From the sequence record NC_028899.1: a stretch of DNA of 64,000 bases; one strand, 5' to 3'. A program made the position numbers and the translations under genes. Within the stretch, counting starts at the first letter, position 1. The number at the start of each line of letters is the position of its first letter. Below are positions 2,383 through 61,830 of this stretch, in pieces. The notes under the pieces were generated by a model. It was not told where the DNA came from and did no database searches. It saw only the letters and a list, made by a program, of their open reading frames with translations.

Positions 2383-2415
2383 GAGTCCCTACTCCCGAAA
2401 GGGAGTAGGGTGCTC
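2383..2415. terminator. Intrinsic terminator between convergent genes
   Basis: CCCTACTCCC-GAAA-GGGAGTAGGG stem with an A-tract on its left (U-tract for minus-strand transcripts). Confidence 0.85.
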
Positions 2416-2420
2416 TGACT

Positions 2421-2729
2421 TTATGCCGGCATCAGCTCAGGCTTGAGTTCTATGACCAGATCCGAAAAGTCACGGGTCAGCACATACGACTCATCCGCTC
2501 TTTGCTCGACGATGTCCAGCGCCTTCAAGACCGACAAGGTGAGTTCCACACTCAGGCCAGACAGGCACTTTGCGAGGTACTCAGACTTGATGTCTTTCAG
2601 CATTGGTCCTTTGCCAAACATAATGATGCGAATGCATCGCAGCCTGTCGTCGTTCAGGTCAACCGAATGACCGTACTTGATTGCAAGCTCTGCTAGTCGA
2701 CGGACTTCGGGATCATGCTTGTTCAGCAT
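2421..2729 (-). CDS. Winged-helix-like small protein (array member 7)
   Basis: 102 aa. 'LTLSVLKALDIVEQRADESYVLTRDFSDLVIE' reads as recognition helix plus wing. Confidence 0.6.
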   Translation of the reverse strand: MLNKHDPEVRRLAELAIKYGHSVDLNDDRLRCIRIIMFGKGPMLKDIKSEYLAKCLSGLSVELTLSVLKALDIVEQRADESYVLTRDFSDLVIELKPELMPA

Positions 2730-3102
2730 TGTCCGTTTCCTCTTTCGGCTTGGAGAACTCCACGATGATTTCCATCATGGAGTCGGTCAGGACGTAGCCC
2801 TTGTTCGTCGGATGAACCACGCCGGAGACGTGCAGCTGGAGCATCACGTCTTTGATGTTTTCGTACGGCATGTAGACCCGACCCTCACGCACTTTCTTGA
2901 GCATGAGGTTTTCGTTGATCGGCCCGTTATCGTTCTTGTAAAGCGTACGGACCACGAAGCCAGACACCGTGATGTTGGCATGGCCGTCGGGCAGGTGCAG
3001 GTTTTCAGCGATGGACTCTTCGGACTTGAAGCACGCCATTGCCATGGACTGGATACGACGGAAGCCCTTACCGTTTTTGTCGATTTTTAACATTTTTAAC
3101 AC
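2713..3102 (-). CDS. Winged-helix-like small protein (array member 6)
   Basis: 129 aa. 'NIKDVMLQLHVSGVVHPTNKGYVLTDSMMEIIVE'. Confidence 0.65.
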   Translation of the reverse strand: MLKMLKIDKNGKGFRRIQSMAMACFKSEESIAENLHLPDGHANITVSGFVVRTLYKNDNGPINENLMLKKVREGRVYMPYENIKDVMLQLHVSGVVHPTNKGYVLTDSMMEIIVEFSKPKEETDNAEQA

Positions 3103-3421
3103 TGACCTCTAAAATGAGTTCTTTAATTTCCGGTGTCAAGCTGTAAAGATTGACCGGATGCGAGTCCACCACACCATTTTCTATCAGATAGCGAAAAGCT
3201 TTCTTGATGTTGTAATCGGTGGCAGTTGCAAACTTATCTTTGCGAATATCACGCCCAAGATCGAAACAGTTATGTTTCTTATTGGGATCGACCAACATCC
3301 TCCTCACAAGCAGGATGTCTAAGCCTACTGGAACTACGCCTTCATCTGGAGCAAGGGTTGCAAGCTCACGCATGCGGACATTGCTCTTATCGAGTTTGGG
3401 TTTTTCGTTCAGCGTCGACAT
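3068..3421 (-). CDS. Winged-helix-like small protein (array member 5)
   Basis: GAGGAG RBS. 'NIKKAFRYLIENGVVDSHPVNLYSLTPEIKELILE'. Confidence 0.7.
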   Translation of the reverse strand: MSTLNEKPKLDKSNVRMRELATLAPDEGVVPVGLDILLVRRMLVDPNKKHNCFDLGRDIRKDKFATATDYNIKKAFRYLIENGVVDSHPVNLYSLTPEIKELILEVSVKNVKNRQKR

Positions 3422-3430
3422 CACTACTCC

Positions 3431-3763
3431 TCAGTGATAGGTTGCTTCATTCTTGATACTTTCGAACACAACCCGCATTTCGGGATGCACTCGATAAAAC
3501 ACGCACGGCAGTTCCGTCTTCGTGGCGAAGATGCCATGCAGCAACATGTCGCGCAGCACATCCTCGACCATCTGGAGCGTATGCTTGCTGTCGTTTTGGT
3601 AGACCGTTCTGGCGATCCATTCCAACGTCAGCTGATAACCTTCCGGCATCAGAATGAAGTGATGGAAGATTCGCATCTTCGCATCCCAGTGCGGCTCGGG
3701 TTCTTTTGCAACGATGACTTTTTCGGCCAACTGGGTACGCCAGATTTGTTTTGCGCTCAGCAT
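3431..3763 (-). CDS. Winged-helix-like small protein (array member 4)
   Basis: 110 aa. 'LTLEWIARTV...MVEDVLRDMLLHGIFATKTELPCVFYRVHPEMRVVFE'. Confidence 0.65.
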   Translation of the reverse strand: MLSAKQIWRTQLAEKVIVAKEPEPHWDAKMRIFHHFILMPEGYQLTLEWIARTVYQNDSKHTLQMVEDVLRDMLLHGIFATKTELPCVFYRVHPEMRVVFESIKNEATYH

Positions 3764-3772
3764 TTCCGGTCC

Positions 3773-4321
3773 TTATTCAAAAGCCTTCTGTTGTTTGAGG
3801 ATGGTGTAAAGATCCATAGCTTCCTTCTTGGTCAGCTTGGACACACCAACATAGATGTGTTCGAGATCTTTCTGAGTCTCGAACAACCACAAAACGTTCT
3901 TGTAAAACTGATACAGGTCTTGAAGCGCAACCTTGTTGCCTTTGACCTGGATGTCCGTCGAGAACAGAAGATGTTTTCCACGCTCACCAGTATAGGTCGA
4001 CATCAAAGACACGAATTCCAGCGTCGGTTGATACCGTATCTGCTGTTCGCCTGAGGCATCAGCGAGAGGTGTCCACTGACTCAAGACAGATGCCTGTAGG
4101 AGATCGCTGATAGCCGTTTCAATCTCCGTTGTGGAAAAGTTGGTCTTACCGCGAATCTTTTCCAAGACTCGAATCTTCGCATGTCCTTCTGGAAATCTGC
4201 TGGGCTCACAGACTACTTGAACAACGCATTCCTCAACCGTCAGATCCTGGCCTAGTTTCACCGGCGCGCAGGCGACTGCAGCTAGTTTCAGAATGGTTTT
4301 GTTGAATTTATCGAGTGCCAT
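3773..4321 (-). CDS. Winged-helix-like protein with C-terminal KG module (array member 3)
   Basis: 182 aa. 'EIETAISDLLQASVLSQW...IRYQPTLEFVSLM', then C-terminal 'IQVKGNKVALQDLYQFY'. Confidence 0.6.
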   Translation of the reverse strand: MALDKFNKTILKLAAVACAPVKLGQDLTVEECVVQVVCEPSRFPEGHAKIRVLEKIRGKTNFSTTEIETAISDLLQASVLSQWTPLADASGEQQIRYQPTLEFVSLMSTYTGERGKHLLFSTDIQVKGNKVALQDLYQFYKNVLWLFETQKDLEHIYVGVSKLTKKEAMDLYTILKQQKAFE

Positions 4322-4354
4322 TTTTGCTCCAATAAAAGGAATTTTGAATTAGTG

Positions 4355-4996
4355 TTACGGAACGAACTTGGCGAGGCTGGACTTGACTTTACCCACGAAG
4401 TCTTTCGTGATTTCAAGCTTCTCGATTTCGTCGAGCGCCTCGTTCAGTTCAGTGATAGTCATCTCGTGCCCCTTGACTTTGTACGACACTTCGATGAACG
4501 ACTTCAGAGGCGTGAAGAACAAAAGACAAGATGCTTTCTCGTAGAAGTCCAACATTTCGTCCATCGTCAGTAACAGACCCTTGTGCTCGAAAACCACCGG
4601 ATCAACACGTCGAGCATATTGCCGATGATTCGCATCTCGCCAATCGACATTGTCTTCCGGTTTCAGGCAGAAGCTGTCAGAGAACTTGGACAGCCTGATG
4701 TCGGAGTGAAGATTCTTGAACACATCGTTCAGCCAATACTTCGTGCGGTTGTTGGGCGTTTGCGCCGACTTCAGAATGCCGTGGCGAGCTAGGTTCTTGG
4801 CTTCCTTACCAACGGTCGTCTGATGCACGTTCTTCAGCAGTCCCGCGATGTCTTTCGGGAACAGCTGGAATTCCGTACCAGCATTGTCCATGAATGCCTG
4901 GACGATACGAGCAGCCAGCGAGCTCGAAATGGTTTTGTCATGTGCGACCATGCCAGCTGCGAGAATGTACGGGTAGGAATTATTATCGGTCTTCAT
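4355..4996 (-). CDS. Winged-helix-like protein with duplicated KG module (array member 2)
   Basis: 213 aa. 'LFPKDIAGLLKNVHQTTVGKEAKNLARHGILKSAQTPNNRTKYWLN', plus 'FEHKGLLLTMDEMLDFY' and 'YKVKGHEMTITELNEAL'. Confidence 0.7.
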   Translation of the reverse strand: MKTDNNSYPYILAAGMVAHDKTISSSLAARIVQAFMDNAGTEFQLFPKDIAGLLKNVHQTTVGKEAKNLARHGILKSAQTPNNRTKYWLNDVFKNLHSDIRLSKFSDSFCLKPEDNVDWRDANHRQYARRVDPVVFEHKGLLLTMDEMLDFYEKASCLLFFTPLKSFIEVSYKVKGHEMTITELNEALDEIEKLEITKDFVGKVKSSLAKFVP

Positions 4997-5045
4997 TTTG
5001 TAGCTCCGTGAAAAGAATTGTAAAAGTTACAACAGGGATTCACGA

Positions 5046-5056
5046 GAATTATATAT
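5046..5056 (-). promoter_or_regulatory. Candidate early-type promoter driving the wHTH operon
   Basis: Minus strand reads TATATAATTC, a variant of TATATTAC, about 50 nt upstream of ATG 4996. Confidence 0.45.
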
Positions 5057-5071
5057 TCGTGAAATAAACTG

Positions 5072-5108
5072 CATAGCACTACACTCTGGCTCACGCCAGA
5101 GTGTAGTG
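5072..5108 (-). terminator. Hairpin + TATG element
   Basis: 14-bp stem CACTACACTCTGGC/GCCAGAGTGTAGTG, GTGA loop on minus, immediately followed by CTATG on minus. Confidence 0.75.
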
Positions 5109-5115
5109 GAGCGCA

Positions 5116-5436
5116 TTATGCTGCGATTTTAAAATTGCAAATCCGGTCGATCTCCAGTCGCGTACGCAAACGCAGACGCGACTCTTTGTGAAGACGAATG
5201 TGATTGATGGAGAAGATACGACGATCCACCAGATAACCTTCGGGCTTCACAAAGCGACTTTTCAGATAACCCCGTTGTTCGAGTGCTTCCAGGACATCCA
5301 TGAGACCATCTGCGAGTAGTTTCCCCTGTGCATCGCGGATCATGTCCGAAGAAGTTTTCTCGACCCCGTAAGGAGCCAACAGAAGACTCATTACCAGCTC
5401 TTCCCGCCCCGTCAATTGATTTTGGTCTTGTTTCAT
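5116..5436 (-). CDS. PadR/BlaI-like winged-helix protein (array member 1)
   Basis: 106 aa. 'LTGREELVMSLL...LMDVLEALEQRGYLKSRFVKPEGYLVDRRIFSIN'. Confidence 0.7.
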   Translation of the reverse strand: MKQDQNQLTGREELVMSLLLAPYGVEKTSSDMIRDAQGKLLADGLMDVLEALEQRGYLKSRFVKPEGYLVDRRIFSINHIRLHKESRLRLRTRLEIDRICNFKIAA

Positions 5437-5459: not shown

Positions 5460-5642
5460 TTATGCGACCCGTGCCGTGTTGTTCATGCTCTTCTGGTCAC
5501 CGTGCCGGTTATGGCTGGTGAGACCATTGGGATGCATGTCGGATTTCTCCGCTTGTTTCATGTCCTGCCTGACCGCAGGGCTCAATGGGTTTTCGGCTTT
5601 GAAGCCGCCCCATTTCGTGGTGCCGTTTCCGGTTGATTCCAT
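5460..5642 (-). CDS. Small hydrophilic hypothetical protein
   Basis: 60-aa ORF co-oriented with its neighbours and filling the gap between them. Confidence 0.45.
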   Translation of the reverse strand: MESTGNGTTKWGGFKAENPLSPAVRQDMKQAEKSDMHPNGLTSHNRHGDQKSMNNTARVA

Positions 5643-5728
5643 TTTTGTACCCGTCCTTACTGGTGAAAAACCACAGGATCAGTCCAAAAAAAAATAGTAG
5701 TCCGCCCCCGCAGGAGCGGACACAACAG

Positions 5729-5887
5729 TTACTTGTTCTTTTTACCCTTCGCCTTATCTGTGGTAAGGCGTTTATCTTCATCCATCAGCTTGCGTGCCTG
5801 CTCGGTCGTCATGTGATGTCGTTTGGCGATATCCGGGTTGTGGGCCGCGGCTTGAAAAAGCTTTCTCTGCTTTTCGTTGTACGGCAT
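5729..5887 (-). CDS. Small basic phage protein (MPYNEKQRKLFQAAAHNPDIAKR family)
   Basis: 52 aa from ATG 5887 with a GAGGAGG RBS. The 'KQ..LF.AAAHNP..AK' pattern is familiar from small phage proteins. Confidence 0.7.
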   Translation of the reverse strand: MPYNEKQRKLFQAAAHNPDIAKRHHMTTEQARKLMDEDKRLTTDKAKGKKNK

Positions 5888-5978
5888 GGTACACCTCCTC
5901 AGTTGTAAAGAAAAAAGTGACCGAAAGCCTCCAAGCCTTCGGTCACACAAATGCCGACCTAAGGGGTCGACAGCCTCG

Positions 5979-7522: not shown

Positions 7523-8785
7523 TTACTGCTTGTTGGCCAACCGGATCTGCGTGGGTTTTTCCTTGTTGTCGACTTCGATCACGTCCCCGAACTCCAAGAA
7601 GGAAATGATCTTTTCGACCAGGTCGCCCGTGTGGCTCTGGATGAAACCGTCGTAATCGACGACGATTCGAATCGGCGAACTGACGCTGATGCCCGTGACC
7701 TTGCCGCGATGCCAGACGGTTTCTTCCTGAACGTTGACGTTAACGGGAGCCGGCATGGCATTGGCTTCGTCCACCAGCTTCGACGCAACGGCACGGGAAG
7801 ACAACAGATCGGCAATGCCCCCGGTCTTTTCTTCATCCGGGATTCCGGATTCGAGCAGATACGAGCAGAGCTCGACCTTCAGACCCGTGATCTTCTTTTG
7901 GCGATCGGGATCGGTGGCAGAGATGTTGAACATCTCGTCGCGCACGTAGGTGTCGATTGCCTGCTTGACCATGCGAACACGATCGTGGCCTTGAATCTCG
8001 GAATGCAGAGCATCGACGCGTTCCATCGGCTGTTCAGTACGGAAACGATAGTTGCCCGAAACCTTGTCCTTGTAAATGAGATCCGGGACCAGATTTCGTT
8101 CACATACGCGAACCGTTGCGCCGATACACAGTTCCTGGAACTCGACTTCCCACGGCCGATCCTGGCGACCGGATTCGTATTCCTCCTGATTCCAGGTAAC
8201 TGGGATACCCAGCGTCTTCAGCTTTTCGCAGATGATGCCGCACAGTGCTGATTTACCCACGCCAGTACGACCCTCTACGACGACACGAATGTCACCGCCA
8301 TTCAGATAGTCGCGAGGAATGTCCGTACGGCCGAGGACTGCCAGCACCCATGCCGCAGCGCCGTCCCACACGATGCGCGCGTTCTTCGTGTCGTAGTGAC
8401 CATACTCGTTCGGGTAATTCGGATGGTCCGCTTCGTAGCGCTGCACGTCCTTGATGAACGGCTGCTTACGAGCAAACGCTTCGAATGCCTTGTTATCGTC
8501 GACGACGACATCCGGCCCCATGTGAACGAGACCGTTCTGCCACTGATACGGTTCGACCTTGACGCCGTATTCCTTGCAGAGTTCGCGGGCGCGCTTGATT
8601 GCATCTGCTTCGGTCTTGCAATCCTTGCTGTGGATCGCCATGCCGTTCTCGTGACGCAGATACACGCCATAGCCGTCGGTGTCCGCATCGGCACCGTCGA
8701 ACTGTACTTCGATCGAACCGTTTTCGAGTTCTTCGAACGGCGCGATTTGAATTGCGATAACTACGCCCAGATCTTTTTCCGACAT
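7523..8785 (-). CDS. Mosaic multi-domain hypothetical protein with an isolated P-loop segment
   Basis: 420 aa. 'VVVEGRTGVGKSAL' Walker A with no evident Walker B, flanked by small modules. Confidence 0.75.
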   Translation of the reverse strand: MSEKDLGVVIAIQIAPFEELENGSIEVQFDGADADTDGYGVYLRHENGMAIHSKDCKTEADAIKRARELCKEYGVKVEPYQWQNGLVHMGPDVVVDDNKAFEAFARKQPFIKDVQRYEADHPNYPNEYGHYDTKNARIVWDGAAAWVLAVLGRTDIPRDYLNGGDIRVVVEGRTGVGKSALCGIICEKLKTLGIPVTWNQEEYESGRQDRPWEVEFQELCIGATVRVCERNLVPDLIYKDKVSGNYRFRTEQPMERVDALHSEIQGHDRVRMVKQAIDTYVRDEMFNISATDPDRQKKITGLKVELCSYLLESGIPDEEKTGGIADLLSSRAVASKLVDEANAMPAPVNVNVQEETVWHRGKVTGISVSSPIRIVVDYDGFIQSHTGDLVEKIISFLEFGDVIEVDNKEKPTQIRLANKQ

Positions 8786-8814
8786 GTTGTAACCTTTTTA
8801 AAAGAGCTATAGAT

Positions 8815-8844
8815 ATACACAGATGCCCTAGGGCATCTGTGTAT
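8815..8844. terminator. Palindromic hairpin
   Basis: ATACACAGATGCCCTAGGGCATCTGTGTAT. Confidence 0.7.
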
Positions 8845-8869
8845 TCAAACGACATGTTTAGTCGTTGGT

Positions 8870-10045
8870 TTACGCCTTAGTGCGCTTGGTCGCCGGCTTC
8901 TTCACCGGAACCTTTTTCGCAGCCGGCGTCTTCGTTGCGATCATGCCGCCGTCTTCGGTCAGCAGACGGACGCGGAAACCGAACTTCGCGGCGATCGCCT
9001 TGGCCTGGTCTTGATTCAGCTTCGTACCGGCGACAGCACGTTTGACGCCGACTTCCTTGGCCACGCGCAGCATCTTCTCCATGTCCGTCACACACATCGT
9101 GCGCGTCAGATCGACCAACTTGATCGTCACGGGGAGGTCGATAATGGCAGGCGGTTTCGCCTTGGTCAGGCGGTTCAGTGCCTCTTTCAGCGCGGGTTTG
9201 CGAACAGCCATGCCCGACAGGTCGATCGTCGACAGACTTGCGACGGGAGCGGCTGCTGCCGACGAATGAGCCGTAGCCGAACTGAGCGAAGCGTCGGGGC
9301 CCGAAGACAACGATGCGCCGCCCAAGGTGCTTGCCGTCTGATCCAGAGTACCGTTGGACTGCTTGGACGCTTGGAAGCCCGTGATGGCCGTTTTGAGGCT
9401 TTCTGCGAAGGTTCCTTGCTGTCCTTCCACCAGCGTCTTCGTGTCCTTGTAGATCACGATCACGACGACGCCACGCGGCCCCATTTCCATGTACTGGACA
9501 CGATCCACGTTTTCCGGTTCGGAGTTCGCGGTACCTTCAGTGACACGAACGAGTTCCTGGCTCTTCGAGTCGTAGCCGACCCAGACAGCTTGCTTGCCGA
9601 CCTTGTGCAGCCCGTCGGTTTGCGATGCCTTCGGATCTGGATCGCGAGTCGTGATATCGTGCTCGACGACCAGGTGGCGCTTCCAGTACGAGATCGGTTC
9701 CACGACAGGCGTGTTGCTGCCTTCTTCCGGTTCTTTCTGGACCGAACGGATGGTCGGCGGGAAGACTTCCGAAACCATCTTGCCCTTGATGAGATCGAAC
9801 ATCGCCAGGTAATGCGGCTCGTCGGGCTGACGAGCCTGACCGTGGAAGACCACCGGTTCGTTCGAGTTGAACGCGATGGCGTATTGCAGGTACGGCAGAC
9901 CTGCGCCTTCTTCACGGCCGACGGTCGTGGTGAGCTTCAGACCTTGTTGCAGGCAGGCCGATGCCATGTCGGCTTGCATCTTCAGGATCGTGGCGTGTTG
10001 TGCGACGATTTCGAGGTTCGATTGATTTTTTACGAGGCTTTTCAA
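8870..10045 (-). CDS. Hypothetical protein with a C-terminal IF2 N-domain-like module and Lys-rich tail
   Basis: 391 aa, TTG start with a GGAGA RBS. 'LPVTIKLVDLTRTMCVTDMEKMLRVAKEVGVKRAVAGTKLNQDQAKAIAAKFGFRV' resembles IF2_N. Confidence 0.65.
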   Translation of the reverse strand: MKSLVKNQSNLEIVAQHATILKMQADMASACLQQGLKLTTTVGREEGAGLPYLQYAIAFNSNEPVVFHGQARQPDEPHYLAMFDLIKGKMVSEVFPPTIRSVQKEPEEGSNTPVVEPISYWKRHLVVEHDITTRDPDPKASQTDGLHKVGKQAVWVGYDSKSQELVRVTEGTANSEPENVDRVQYMEMGPRGVVVIVIYKDTKTLVEGQQGTFAESLKTAITGFQASKQSNGTLDQTASTLGGASLSSGPDASLSSATAHSSAAAAPVASLSTIDLSGMAVRKPALKEALNRLTKAKPPAIIDLPVTIKLVDLTRTMCVTDMEKMLRVAKEVGVKRAVAGTKLNQDQAKAIAAKFGFRVRLLTEDGGMIATKTPAAKKVPVKKPATKRTKA

Positions 10046-10047
10046 AA

Positions 10048-10395
10048 TTATCTCCGTTTGGAGTTTTGGGATTGGAACGACAAGTCCGTCACATGGATAA
10101 ACTTGTCGTAGAATTCGGATTCCCGAAGGATCTCCGATTGACCATCTTCGCGAATGACGATGAAATCGTACTCGTGACAGACCTGGATATTGTCACGCGC
10201 GAATTCGAACGTGATCTCTTTCATGAAACCACGCACGTTTCGCGCTCCGACTGCTTTCTGGAGAAAGAAGAAGGGGAGCTCGTCGGGATAGCCCCTGTAC
10301 TGAAAAGCGTAGTACTTCTGTGTCGTCGTCGGCACGTGAGCGTACTTTAGCAGTTCGTCTTCTTCTTTCCGTGTGAGTCGACTTTCGCTGTCCAT
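10048..10395 (-). CDS. Small phage protein
   Basis: 115 aa from ATG 10395. 'YDFIVIREDGQSEILRESEFYDKF' matches a common phage module. Confidence 0.65.
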   Translation of the reverse strand: MDSESRLTRKEEDELLKYAHVPTTTQKYYAFQYRGYPDELPFFFLQKAVGARNVRGFMKEITFEFARDNIQVCHEYDFIVIREDGQSEILRESEFYDKFIHVTDLSFQSQNSKRR

Positions 10396-10631
10396 TATTC
10401 TCCCTTCAAAGATGGGACAGGTTGGTATTTGGCCAGATCCTTGGCGAGTATCAGGATCTGTCCGTTGAGGCCGTGCAGATAGTGCATCAGGAACACTGCG
10501 CACAAAAGCACGATTATGCCGAGAACGCTTGCGCGTCGACGGTAGAAAAGTTCGTTGCACAACATGATGATGCTGACGAGCAGCAACAGGCCCAGAGCGG
10601 TGATCGCCAAAAATGCTTGCATTTTATCCAC
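10395..10631 (-). CDS. Small membrane protein (two TM helices)
   Basis: 78 aa, GTG start with an AGGA RBS, two hydrophobic stretches. First gene after the TATATTAC promoter. Confidence 0.65.
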   Translation of the reverse strand: MDKMQAFLAITALGLLLLVSIIMLCNELFYRRRASVLGIIVLLCAVFLMHYLHGLNGQILILAKDLAKYQPVPSLKGE

Positions 10632-11823: not shown

Positions 11824-12238
11824 ACAATCCGCTGCGTACCGCTTTTGTTAGGGAGATGTGGCCCTTCATCGCCACTTCGAAATCTGCGAGGTTCTGAGCT
11901 TCGTTCGGGTTGTACGGAATGATGCCCAGACGAATCACCATGTCGTGAACGAAATCCACGAACTCAGGATCGGGCCATCCCAAGCCTTTTGCAACTTCGA
12001 TGAGGATGTCCTGACGCCATTTCCATCCCATCAGATATGCCATGGCGTAATAATTCACTGCCTGTTCGGAGCCGACTTCCTCTTCAACCACCGAACCCGC
12101 ATTGACCCGAACCGCAGCCGTACAGAGGTTTGCGAATTCGTAAAGAAAGCGTTGCTTGACTTCTTCCGACAATGCCGGATTGAAGGTATTGACTTTGGCT
12201 TCTCTGTAAATCACGGTTCGCCTCATTAAAAGAAGCAA
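11705..12238 (-). CDS. Hypothetical protein
   Basis: About 160-177-aa ORF co-oriented with its neighbours. Start uncertain. Confidence 0.6.
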   Translation of the reverse strand: MLLLMRRTVIYREAKVNTFNPALSEEVKQRFLYEFANLCTAAVRVNAGSVVEEEVGSEQAVNYYAMAYLMGWKWRQDILIEVAKGLGWPDPEFVDFVHDMVIRLGIIPYNPNEAQNLADFEVAMKGHISLTKAVRSGLFAFPAARQAYNAWCKALNRKHTPHVEQQLGLVERDRKKD

Positions 12239-12245
12239 AAAAAAA

Positions 12246-12268
12246 TGGTGAGGGAAATTCCCTCACCA
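12246..12268 (-). terminator. Intrinsic terminator
   Basis: TGGTGAGGG-AAATT-CCCTCACCA with an A-tract on its left. Confidence 0.75.
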
Positions 12269-12284
12269 CTAACACGCCGAACGC

Positions 12285-13730
12285 TTACGCGCGCAGGAAA
12301 GCGTTCATCGCGTAGAACTTCAGGACCGGATCGAAAGCACCCGAAAGCGTGCCGATTTTCCAGCGGTCATGCGCCGGAATGTGAGCGATCGTTTCCGGCG
12401 ACATGTAGTGCCCGCCGTTCTCGACGTTGGCTTCGGTCATGAAACGACTTTGCACCACGCGCTCGACGGGCTTGCTGACGAACTCGATCGTCTCGTAGAG
12501 CGAATCGACGATCGAACGGCTCCAGCATTCCAGACGAGTCGGAAGAGTTTCTTCGTCGTTGTCCAGATACAGGCGTTCGAGATCGGTGAAGCCGACGTCG
12601 ATGAGCTCTTCTTCGTTCGTGACGATCTCGCAGTTCTCCGGCACTTCGATGGCGATGAACATGCCCAGATGCACCTTCTCGACATCGCCCGACGCGTAGT
12701 CGAGGAAGAAGTTGGTGCGCTGATAGAGCCATTGCTCCGGCGACATCATTTCGGCTTGCGCTGCCGACAGAATGATGTCTTCGACCGTGATCTCGTTCTC
12801 CGTCGGATACGGATCGCCGCCGTTGGCGCTGAGAATTGCCGAAAGTTTCATGCGAATTTCTTCACGGCCTTCGCGGAACAGGTTGTTCAGGATGCCCGTC
12901 CAGAAACCGTCGACGAGCATGCGACCCGTGAAGTTGCTGCACAAAGACATGCCGCTCGGGAGACGTTCGGCGCTGTACTTCGACTGCATCGACAGGAAGT
13001 CGTGCGAGTTGATGTGGCCGCCCACGCCGATCGAGCAACCGAGTGCTAGACGTTCTTCACCGACGCCCTTGCCACGCTGGTACACGAAGATCTGGTACTT
13101 GCCGTTGACCTTCTTGTAGAAGATGACGTACGGCAGCAACTGCACGAAGCGCGTATCGGTTTCGCACCAGCCGCGCCGAATGAAGTTCAGCGCCAGGTAG
13201 ACGCATTGGTTCAGTTCGTTCGGACGCACTTCACCTTCGGGTACAGCGAGCATCGCGTTCAGCAGTTCGCGCGCCGGGATCGCGAGGACTTGTTCGACCG
13301 GCTTTGCCTGGCCTTCGACCGACTCGCAGTAGTCAGTGTAGTTCGGCAGGCGGCCGAAGTCGTGTTCCTTGAACGGATCGTGTTCGACGGGCGGCTTTTC
13401 GTCGATCATCAGCGGGATCTGGCTCGGCATCAGGTTCGTGCCGAACTTCGGTACGGCGATGACGTCGTCGAGGATCTGTTCGCCGAACTGGTTTGCGAAA
13501 CCGAGACTCACGATGCCGCCCATCGGGGTCATCACGGTTTCTTTGTCGTCGCTCATGGCATGCGCGCGCCGGATCTGTTCCAGATTCACGGGGAACAGGG
13601 GTTGGTAGCAGCGGGCCGAGAGCGGGAACGACAGATTGCCGTCGTCCAGATCGTCTTGTTGATTGCAGGCGGGGGTGATCAGAACACGCTGTTCTTGTTC
13701 TGCTTCTTGGAATCGTTCTTCGAGCGACAT
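12285..13730 (-). CDS. Nudix-family hydrolase (COG4112-like) with N- and C-terminal extensions
   Basis: 481 aa. 'QLLPYVIF...YQRGKGVGEERL..GCSIGVGGHIN...REGREEI...HLGMF'. Confidence 0.75.
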   Translation of the reverse strand: MSLEERFQEAEQEQRVLITPACNQQDDLDDGNLSFPLSARCYQPLFPVNLEQIRRAHAMSDDKETVMTPMGGIVSLGFANQFGEQILDDVIAVPKFGTNLMPSQIPLMIDEKPPVEHDPFKEHDFGRLPNYTDYCESVEGQAKPVEQVLAIPARELLNAMLAVPEGEVRPNELNQCVYLALNFIRRGWCETDTRFVQLLPYVIFYKKVNGKYQIFVYQRGKGVGEERLALGCSIGVGGHINSHDFLSMQSKYSAERLPSGMSLCSNFTGRMLVDGFWTGILNNLFREGREEIRMKLSAILSANGGDPYPTENEITVEDIILSAAQAEMMSPEQWLYQRTNFFLDYASGDVEKVHLGMFIAIEVPENCEIVTNEEELIDVGFTDLERLYLDNDEETLPTRLECWSRSIVDSLYETIEFVSKPVERVVQSRFMTEANVENGGHYMSPETIAHIPAHDRWKIGTLSGAFDPVLKFYAMNAFLRA

Positions 13731-36605: not shown

Positions 36606-36613
36606 GTTATATA
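36606..36613 (-). promoter_or_regulatory. Early-promoter-like motif TATATAAC
   Basis: One mismatch to TATATTAC, downstream of a terminator. Confidence 0.5.
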
Positions 36614-36637
36614 TCAATGAAAAAATCTAAAGAGAGA

Positions 36638-61675: not shown

Positions 61676-61830
61676 TTAAGACTCCCTAGACAATTTTGGT
61701 AAGCGAGGGATTCGCTTGTTTTAACCAACAGAACTAGAACCCAGCAAAAGTTTTAGCCGGAAATTCATTTTGATTATATATTGTTGATTTTTTCTGCATT
61801 ATATCTGAATGCTAGAGAAATAAAAACAGA

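Follow-up and report, generated by a model that had tools for sequence, protein, structure and literature searches.

A tandem array of fast-evolving winged-helix genes beside a PadR-like gene in the jumbo Ralstonia phage RSF1

The locus

The window analysed here is a stretch of 64,000 nucleotides (nt), bases 124001-188000 of Ralstonia phage RSF1 (NC_028899.1), a jumbo phage of the genus Chiangmaivirus (family Chimalliviridae in the current NCBI taxonomy). Between positions 2421 and 5436 of this window lie seven consecutive genes on the minus strand, o1 to o7. They correspond to open reading frames (ORFs) ORF127-133 of RSF1, every one of them annotated as "hypothetical". An earlier reading of the letters alone, below called the sequence-only reading, had taken them for an array of seven diverged winged-helix proteins of 102-213 amino acids (aa), and all seven ORFs are found where it had placed them. 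As described below, a fast-evolving winged-helix family (o1 to o6) has expanded here in tandem and in a lineage-specific manner, and a separate, PadR-like gene, o7, lies beside it. The seven genes are:

2421-2729, minus strand: o1 (ORF127), 102 aa, acidic (isoelectric point, pI, 5.7), member of the winged-helix family
2713-3102, minus strand: o2 (ORF128), 129 aa as an open frame, 126 aa from the ATG at 3093
3068-3424, minus strand: o3 (ORF129), 117-118 aa, basic (pI 9.6), hub of the paralogue network
3431-3763, minus strand: o4 (ORF130), 110 aa, divergent member that joins the family with an iterated profile only
3773-4321, minus strand: o5 (ORF131), 182 aa, winged-helix domain (residues 1-120) and second module (about 121-182)
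4355-4996, minus strand: o6 (ORF132), 213 aa, N-terminal family domain and second module of the o5 type
5116-5436, minus strand: o7 (ORF133), 106 aa, basic (pI 9.5), single copy, winged helix

RefSeq starts o1, o3 and o7 later, giving proteins of 60, 75 and 87 aa. The orthologs of six related phages can be aligned along the whole length listed above for each protein (102, 117-118 and 106 aa), and the RefSeq starts of ORF127, ORF129 and ORF133 therefore look too far downstream. For o2 the orthologs favour the ATG at 3093.

Six of the seven genes are diverged paralogues

The sequence-only reading had described a common motif and illustrated it with four peptides. The peptides are exact, while the pattern as literally written matches no ORF at all. 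A slightly loosened form of it is found in five of the seven array ORFs and in none of the window's remaining 283 ORFs with 60 aa or more, which comprise about 47.8 thousand residues, so the signature is specific and not a product of chance.

BLAST alignments between the RSF1 paralogues are weak, with expectation values (E) from 0.004 to 1. Profiles were built from the syntenic region, from the DnaB-like helicase to the array, of six annotated relatives, of the IMG/VR contig L010 and of L013, L016 and L018, metagenomic contigs reached via protein matches; hhalign was run on the ortholog alignments from 11 loci. Every RSF1 array ORF has orthologs, o6 having a single one among these loci (in L016) and another, P0069, from a protein search. 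The strongest links are those of o1 with o3 (probability 95.3%, E 2e-8, 93 columns), of o1 with the N-terminal half of o5 (95.1%), of o2 with o3 (92.4%) and of o5 with o6 (74.9% over 122 columns). As a background, 185 of the 210 family pairs score below 5%, in a set that includes the unrelated neighbours o8 and o9.

A second-iteration profile, S2, was made from the o1, o2, o3 and N-terminal o5 families and their distant matches. It retrieves all ten members of the o4 family nearly end to end (E 1.5e-6 to 0.03), the best decoy among about 290 window ORFs having an E of 0.92. Aligned by hhalign, S2 gives 73.8% with o4 and 62.6% with o6.

The seventh gene behaves differently. Comparison of o7 with the o1-o6 family by hhalign (local, low-mact and global) gives 2.5-5.9% and thus no link, and the hmmsearch scores of o7 against the S2 and S3 profiles lie within the decoy range. 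Because no sequence method retrieves o7, paralogy holds for six of the genes and is not demonstrable for the seventh. The all-against-all profile comparison that had been proposed for the array hence finds mutual similarity among o1 to o6, with o7 excepted, and of the proposed seven-member array six members stand as paralogues, with o7 a winged helix that has no sequence link to them. A MAFFT alignment of o4 and o7 brings out a common pattern, G-ϕ-L-x-(S/T)-(R/K)...P...(Y/I)R(L/V)H (ϕ, hydrophobic), which we do not count as evidence.

The signature of o1-o6 begins with a helix L(D/N)K..(D/N)..ϕ..LA and an H1 helix ϕ(V/I)R.ϕ; it continues with L..L...Gϕϕ in H3, the wing strand Y.LT and ϕ..Lϕ.E in the next helix. 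It is present in the family alignments A1, A2 and A8 and absent from o7. Judged by their alignments, o1 to o6 are a tandem duplication that has diverged to 15-25% identity.

In o5, o6 and their relatives a second module follows the winged helix and consists of two copies of a strand-(K)G-strand-helix unit (alignment A6). The C-terminal parts of o5 and o6 alone align in hhalign with 65% (E 6e-5, 53 columns), which bears out the earlier proposal that two of the ORFs have a second module in common.

A winged-helix family outside the named models

None of o1 to o7 matches a named family in Pfam, NCBIfam or PHROGs, and a Pfam scan of 48 family members gives scattered sub-threshold matches only. Searched exhaustively with hmmsearch, 1.8 billion representative sequences yield only 30 proteins that match the o1-o3 profile at E <=1e-3. 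Among these are two long repeat proteins, P0037 (788 aa, six matched stretches) and P0045 (851 aa), whose repeats score above the Pfam gathering score for MarR; the stretch matched by the profile coincides with the MarR match. A sequence profile search of the PDB gives 12 marginal matches, of which about eight are winged-helix proteins (CRP, MCM, BlaI, TFIIF, Zur), and these align to the same part of the family profile. PDB sequence searches with the o7 and o4 profiles give nothing useful.

Structure prediction followed by Foldseek, one of the checks suggested for the array, was run for o5 and o7, and both are modelled as winged helices. The outcomes named beforehand as refuting the array, models of another fold or a lack of mutual profile similarity, thus do not occur, with o7 as the exception for the second. 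The AlphaFold2 model of o5, from a 48-row alignment, has a predicted local distance difference test score (pLDDT) of 81.8 overall and of 83-96 over residues 1-110. It consists of an extra N-terminal helix, the helix (H) and strand (b or E) order H-b-H-H-b-b (H29-37, E47-48, H49-59, H64-76, E80-83, E96-99) and a long helix after the wing. Its 50 best Foldseek matches in the PDB are mostly winged-helix proteins, including TFIIE-alpha, MecI/BlaI, PadR, MarR/SlyA, Orc1 and F-93 of SSV1. The second module of o5 is modelled as a beta-hairpin and a helix with pLDDT 60-80, and it has no distinct structural match in the Foldseek search with the o5 model.

The model of o7, from 11 rows, has a pLDDT of 81. 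It shows the same H-b-H-H-b-b order with an extended wing and a C-terminal helix of 23 residues (H10-20, bridge at 27, H29-35, H45-54, E58-63, E72-77, H79-101). Winged-helix proteins dominate its 50 best PDB matches, the best being LmrR/PadR, TFIIE-alpha, Pex and RTP (E 2e-4 to 5e-3, template modelling score, TM, about 0.53). A fold search of BFVD with o7 returns generic viral winged helix-turn-helix (wHTH) proteins only and no Chimalliviridae protein of known function.

For o1-o4 and o6 the winged-helix fold is inferred through their homology to o5. The family is thus a winged-helix family covered by no Pfam, NCBIfam or named PHROGs model. The folds had been described earlier as of the PadR/MarR/Z-alpha type. 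The winged helix itself is supported by the o5 and o7 models and by the MarR repeats, but not the Z-alpha part: Z-alpha is absent from the 50 best PDB matches of o5 and o7 and from the PDB sequence matches (the Z-DNA contact residues were left aside).

P0037 is a bacterial protein (GCA_054021655.1; positions 6001-8367 of contig L021) with at least six MarR-type repeats joined by charged linkers. Its neighbours are a PARIS-like pair (an AAA_15/AAA_21 ATPase and a DUF4435 gene) and a pair of HEPN and nucleotidyltransferase genes, so that it looks like part of a defence island. P0045 is similar to P0037.

A probable operon behind a conserved intergenic block

From o6 to o1 the genes are separated by gaps of 33, 9 and 6 nt and then overlap by 26-35 and 17 nt, in agreement with the tight packing of six genes seen in the sequence-only reading. 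On both sides of these genes, conserved or structured elements are found:

2387-2410, minus strand: hairpin, likely terminator, GC-rich, stem of 10 base pairs (bp), loop TTTC, T-rich tail
5004-5007, minus strand: GGAG, the o6 ribosome-binding site, conserved in all nine relatives with alignment coverage
5019-5031, minus strand: inverted repeat TGTAA-N3-TTACA, conserved, between the promoter-like block and the ribosome-binding site of o6
5041-5068, minus strand: promoter-like block TTTATTTCA-N3-ATATATAA(T/C)-6N-G, invariant or nearly so in 10 phages
5077-5108, minus strand: 14-bp hairpin directly after the o7 stop codon, supported by covariation

Downstream, a terminator had been proposed at 2383-2415, and the GC-rich hairpin found there sits between o1 and the convergent DnaB gene. 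It is likely the terminator of the o6-o1 operon. Upstream, the promoter-like string noted near 5050, TATATAAT, is present at 5048-5055 on the minus strand. Read from o7, the order is hairpin, promoter-like block, inverted repeat, GGAG and the start codon of o6, and across 10 phages this intergenic block is better conserved than the surrounding coding sequence. In the hairpin after o7, 93.6% of the alignment cells are paired and 7 of the 14 pairs have changed on both sides. These features suggest a single operon, o6 to o1, with the conserved promoter-like block in front of it and the inverted repeat as a candidate operator. Early expression of the operon is plausible from the same features, though the early timing proposed in the sequence-only reading is unsupported.

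A sigma-70 scan upstream of o6 finds nothing convincing. An AT-rich element with the start six bases downstream is the promoter layout reported for the virion RNA polymerase of phiKZ-related phages (PMC5312081), and the promoter-like block, with its AT-rich element, six bases and G, matches this layout. However, the replication of RSF1 and RSL2 is rifampicin-sensitive, unlike that of RP12 and RP31 (PMC5468394), and for this reason a -10 box of the host polymerase is an equally possible reading of the AT-rich element.

The 21-nt promoter block occurs a single time in the window, even when three mismatches are allowed. The shorter core (A/T)TATATAA(T/C) occurs three times, always intergenic and on the minus strand, and with only three occurrences it cannot define a promoter class. 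The two further copies lie at 36606-36614 and 61773-61781. Before each of the three come TATG(T)C and a T-rich stretch, to which the copy at 61773 adds a hairpin; the three may represent a small promoter class of RSF1.

Distribution and evolution of the array

Conservation in related jumbo phages, another of the proposed checks, is found in the form of orthologs across the Chiangmaivirus relatives. The identities given here are those between RSF1 and eight close relatives. The flanking genes are well conserved, DnaB being 87-96% and the upstream ORF125 81-85% identical, and o7 follows with 75-83%. Within the array the values fall to 57-66% for o2, 44-65% for o3, 38-60% for o4, 37-59% for o5 and 37-45% for o1. 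The o6 gene is absent from most of the eight, and among the relatives examined it is found in a few metagenomic ones only. The o2 subfamily is the most widespread of the array subfamilies in metagenomes.

All 12 loci compared contain exactly one o7-type gene and between four and eight copies of the family domain. In some relatives the domains are fused. L010 encodes a 452-aa protein (11935-13293) with two family domains beside DnaB, and at the same genomic position L020 encodes proteins of 594 aa (8001-9785) with two to three domains and of 252 aa (9789-10547) with two. The order o7-like gene, array, DnaB is retained on L025, a contig of 45 kb that is more distant. Two short metagenomic contigs, L023 and L026, carry four to five consecutive family genes without DnaB or an o7-type gene; some of these genes have two domains and a second module of the o5 type. 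A DNA search with L023 against isolated phages gives no match.

Among isolated phages, tblastn finds o2 or o7 in 9 of 50,697 records, all of them Chiangmaivirus. At this sensitivity no family member is found in other Chimalliviridae of the phage collection, and none lies downstream of DnaB in RP12 or in L011 and L012, two contigs of more remote relationship. The set had been called ancient, duplicated and diversified. The diverged tandem duplication is evident, but its great age is doubtful, because the family evolves fast and is known only from Chiangmaivirus and a few uncultivated contigs.

In phages FLC8, FLC6 and FLC4-5C (L005-L007), two additional genes of about 170 and 283 aa, neither of them detectably related to the family, lie between DnaB and the array. 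The same three phages have a gene of 61-64 aa, possibly a truncated family copy, whose similarity to the domain is limited to the H3-wing-helix end (hhalign 52%).

Comparison with known systems

The LmrR/PadR-s2 group (PF03551) is the nearest known counterpart of o7, which at about 105 aa consists of a winged helix and one long C-terminal helix (H79-101), has LmrR, PadR and Pex chains among its best PDB matches at the E values given above, and is encoded directly upstream of a conserved inverted repeat. This architecture is found in o7 only; o1 to o6 have the extra N-terminal helix and another sequence signature. Neither o1-o7 nor the 48 family members match PF03551 at E <=1, and the identity of o7 to its PDB matches is only 15-19%.

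The family domain resembles MarR (PF01047) in that the o1-o3 profile matches a MarR-repeat protein at E 3.6e-8 in the search of 1.8 billion sequences, and in the MarR and SlyA chains of the o5 Foldseek list. However, PF01047 matches no protein of the window, the sole link is transitive through P0037 and P0045, and the dimer interface of N- and C-terminal helices is not seen in the o5 model. In the repressors BlaI and MecI, too, the part that follows the winged helix is helical; they occupy ranks 2-12 in the o5 list, and BlaI is a marginal sequence match of the family profile. Here the E values are 3e-3 to 2e-2, the root-mean-square deviation over the whole chain is high, and the cleavage-sensor context is missing. 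For MksE/ScpB, the tandem winged-helix proteins that interact with kleisins, only the fused relative P0042 comes close, below threshold (22.1 bits against 26.9 for DUF4364, 15.4 against 27 for MksE). Among the small wHTH proteins encoded by archaeal viruses, F-93 of SSV1 and Stf76 of pSSVx match in structure and are similar in size, with no sequence relation; they are single genes, not arrays.

According to Iyer et al. 2021 (PMC7824862), the number of specific transcription factors is 1-15 in most jumbo phages, the majority being of the HTH or wHTH type, and in Bacillus phage G both Myb-type HTH domains and zinc ribbons (about 35 of the latter) are expanded. As in phage G, a jumbo phage has here multiplied one small nucleic-acid-binding domain. 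The RSF1 expansion differs in the domain concerned, in belonging to a genus of nucleus-forming Chimalliviridae, in lying in one tight operon and in its fused versions in relatives. RSL2 is not mentioned in that paper (RSF1 was not looked for there). No published description of such an array in Chimalliviridae was found, as the sequence-only reading had supposed. Across the relatives, the typical state of the family is a tandem array or a fused multi-domain protein.

What the array may do

We are highly confident of the identity, the fold and the evolutionary history of the locus. For the mechanism, we tentatively rank first a regulation through the binding of nucleic acids. The best candidate for a regulator is o7, because it is basic, single-copy, similar to PadR-s2 and encoded immediately upstream of the promoter-like block and the repeat. 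It would probably be a dimeric DNA-binding regulator with the TGTAA-N3-TTACA repeat as its likely target, and by binding there it would gate the transcription of the operon. The six paralogues, made together, would then be a set of sequence-diversified nucleic-acid binders. By their pI values (o3 9.6, o6 mildly basic with 7.8, o7 9.5, and 5.7-6.9 for o1, o2, o4 and o5), the basic o3 and o6 could be the better DNA or RNA binders and the acidic to neutral o1, o2, o4 and o5 possible partners or modulators. The paralogues could function as hetero-oligomers or side by side; they may act together, since relatives encode the same domains fused in single polypeptides. During infection, the array would serve to adjust the transcription of phage or host. 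Taking identity and regulatory mechanism together, one compromise figure for the whole explanation is a probability of about 0.5.

Several points weigh against this explanation. The acidic or neutral paralogues o1, o2, o4 and o5 have few basic residues in the third helix, which is unusual for DNA-binding winged helices. The array diverges several-fold faster than its neighbours, and regulators of a core programme are usually conserved. DNA binding, dimerisation, the timing of expression and any regulatory target are predictions only. The inverted repeat occurs once in the window with no enrichment, and may just as well be an element of the 5' untranslated RNA. The hairpin at 5077-5108 is terminator-like but lacks an adjacent U-run and is not called by a terminator scan. 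Within the family, the links of o4 and o6 are moderate (63-75%) and not decisive, and the second module of o5 is modelled with a pLDDT of only 60-80.

A close second to nucleic-acid-binding regulation, favoured by the evolutionary pattern, is a role of the array as a diversifying module of host interaction, serving counter-defence or takeover. Here the winged helices would be protein-binding or decoy surfaces and each paralogue would have its own host target, possibly including the host RNA polymerase that RSF1 needs. The several-fold faster divergence relative to the flanking genes fits this well, as do the copy number of 4-8 with gain, loss and fusion between close relatives, the acidic or neutral pI of most paralogues, the restriction to one genus among isolated phages, the absence of the family downstream of DnaB in RP12 and the rifampicin sensitivity that sets RSF1 and RSL2 apart from RP12 and RP31 (PMC5468394). 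However, winged-helix domains mostly bind nucleic acids, o3 and o6 are basic, and relaxed constraint would explain the fast evolution as well. No likeness to known anti-defence proteins appears in the library and structure searches (PADLOC was not run), and no host partner of the array proteins is known. In a more elaborate and rather unlikely version, o1-o6 would form a hetero-oligomeric winged-helix assembly with o7 as its switch, a fast-diversifying takeover or counter-defence device peculiar to the Chiangmaivirus lineage that, for example, redirects or sequesters the host RNA polymerase or else acts as a decoy for wHTH sensors of the host. In phiKZ the host RNA polymerase is reportedly not needed, unlike in Chiangmaivirus phages. 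The roles as host-takeover repressors, nucleus-architecture proteins or decoys that had been offered with the sequence-only reading are conjecture.

It is improbable that the proteins are architectural, coating or organising the phage DNA in the phage nucleus with winged-helix units in series. The multi-domain fusions in relatives, the adjoining replicative helicase gene and the six genes in one predicted co-expressed unit would suit this, but chromatin-like proteins are normally abundant, basic and conserved, while the array is mostly non-basic, poorly conserved and, at tblastn sensitivity, absent from other Chimalliviridae in the phage collection. We consider it just as improbable that o7, perhaps with the whole set, is a cofactor like TFE or TFIIE-alpha that docks on a multisubunit RNA polymerase of phage or host. 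This idea comes from the structural matches, since TFIIE-alpha (5gpy_A) ranks first for o5 and fifth for o7 in Foldseek, TFE-alpha is also among the o5 matches and the extended wing is as in o7; in addition, the o7 ortholog of L010 is named "transcription initiation factor IIE alpha subunit" in its source database. The TM-scores are about 0.5-0.6, though, and for o7 the PadR/LmrR matches are equal or better. There is no sequence match and no zinc ribbon, and the cysteines (one in o7, three in o5) form no CxxC-type motif pair. The distribution does not track that of phage RNA polymerases: o7 is outside the conserved Chimalliviridae gene set, and tblastn finds it in Chiangmaivirus only. Finally, the similarity could be a chance pattern in unrelated or spurious small ORFs, as the weak BLAST pairs between paralogues might suggest. 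This is refuted by full-length orthologs in at least nine phages (for o6, in a few metagenomic relatives only), by profile-profile probabilities of up to 95%, by two confident AlphaFold2 models (o5 and o7) and by the absence of the motif from the 283 other ORFs.

The fold is very common, and the value of the result is that of an annotation and a lead more than of a surprise. To our knowledge, the specific regulators of gene expression in Chimalliviridae are largely unknown, and o7 beside a conserved block of promoter and inverted repeat is a testable candidate for a regulator and its site. The fast-evolving array is likewise a candidate host-interaction module, in phages that are studied as biocontrol agents.

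Annotation and neighbouring genes

The analysis assigns a fold to seven "hypothetical" genes of RSF1 and to their orthologs in nine isolated jumbo phages of Ralstonia and Burkholderia. In RSF1 three RefSeq starts, and possibly a fourth, look wrong, and RSL2 has one unannotated gene. The fourth start is that of ORF134 (5460-5642), given 33 aa by RefSeq; the open frame has 60 aa, and the gene is annotated with 58-60 aa in relatives. This case is less certain, the alignment having covered the last 33 aa only. The RSL2 gene (about 2955-3355 of L004, minus strand) is an intact o3-type ORF, 44% identical to RSF1 o3 over its full length, which falls in the RefSeq annotation gap between ORF121 and ORF122 of that phage.

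A few genes past the array, RSL2 ORF128 (6429-6719 of L004) is annotated as a HicB-like antitoxin and has no counterpart in the RSF1 annotation of the same stretch. In RSF1, ORF135 (5729-5887, minus strand) is a small basic gene of 52 aa (pI 10), 67-75% conserved in close relatives. It is flanked by two strong terminator-like hairpins on the minus strand (5700-5721 and 5917-5946) and looks like a tiny transcription unit of its own just upstream of o8 and o7.

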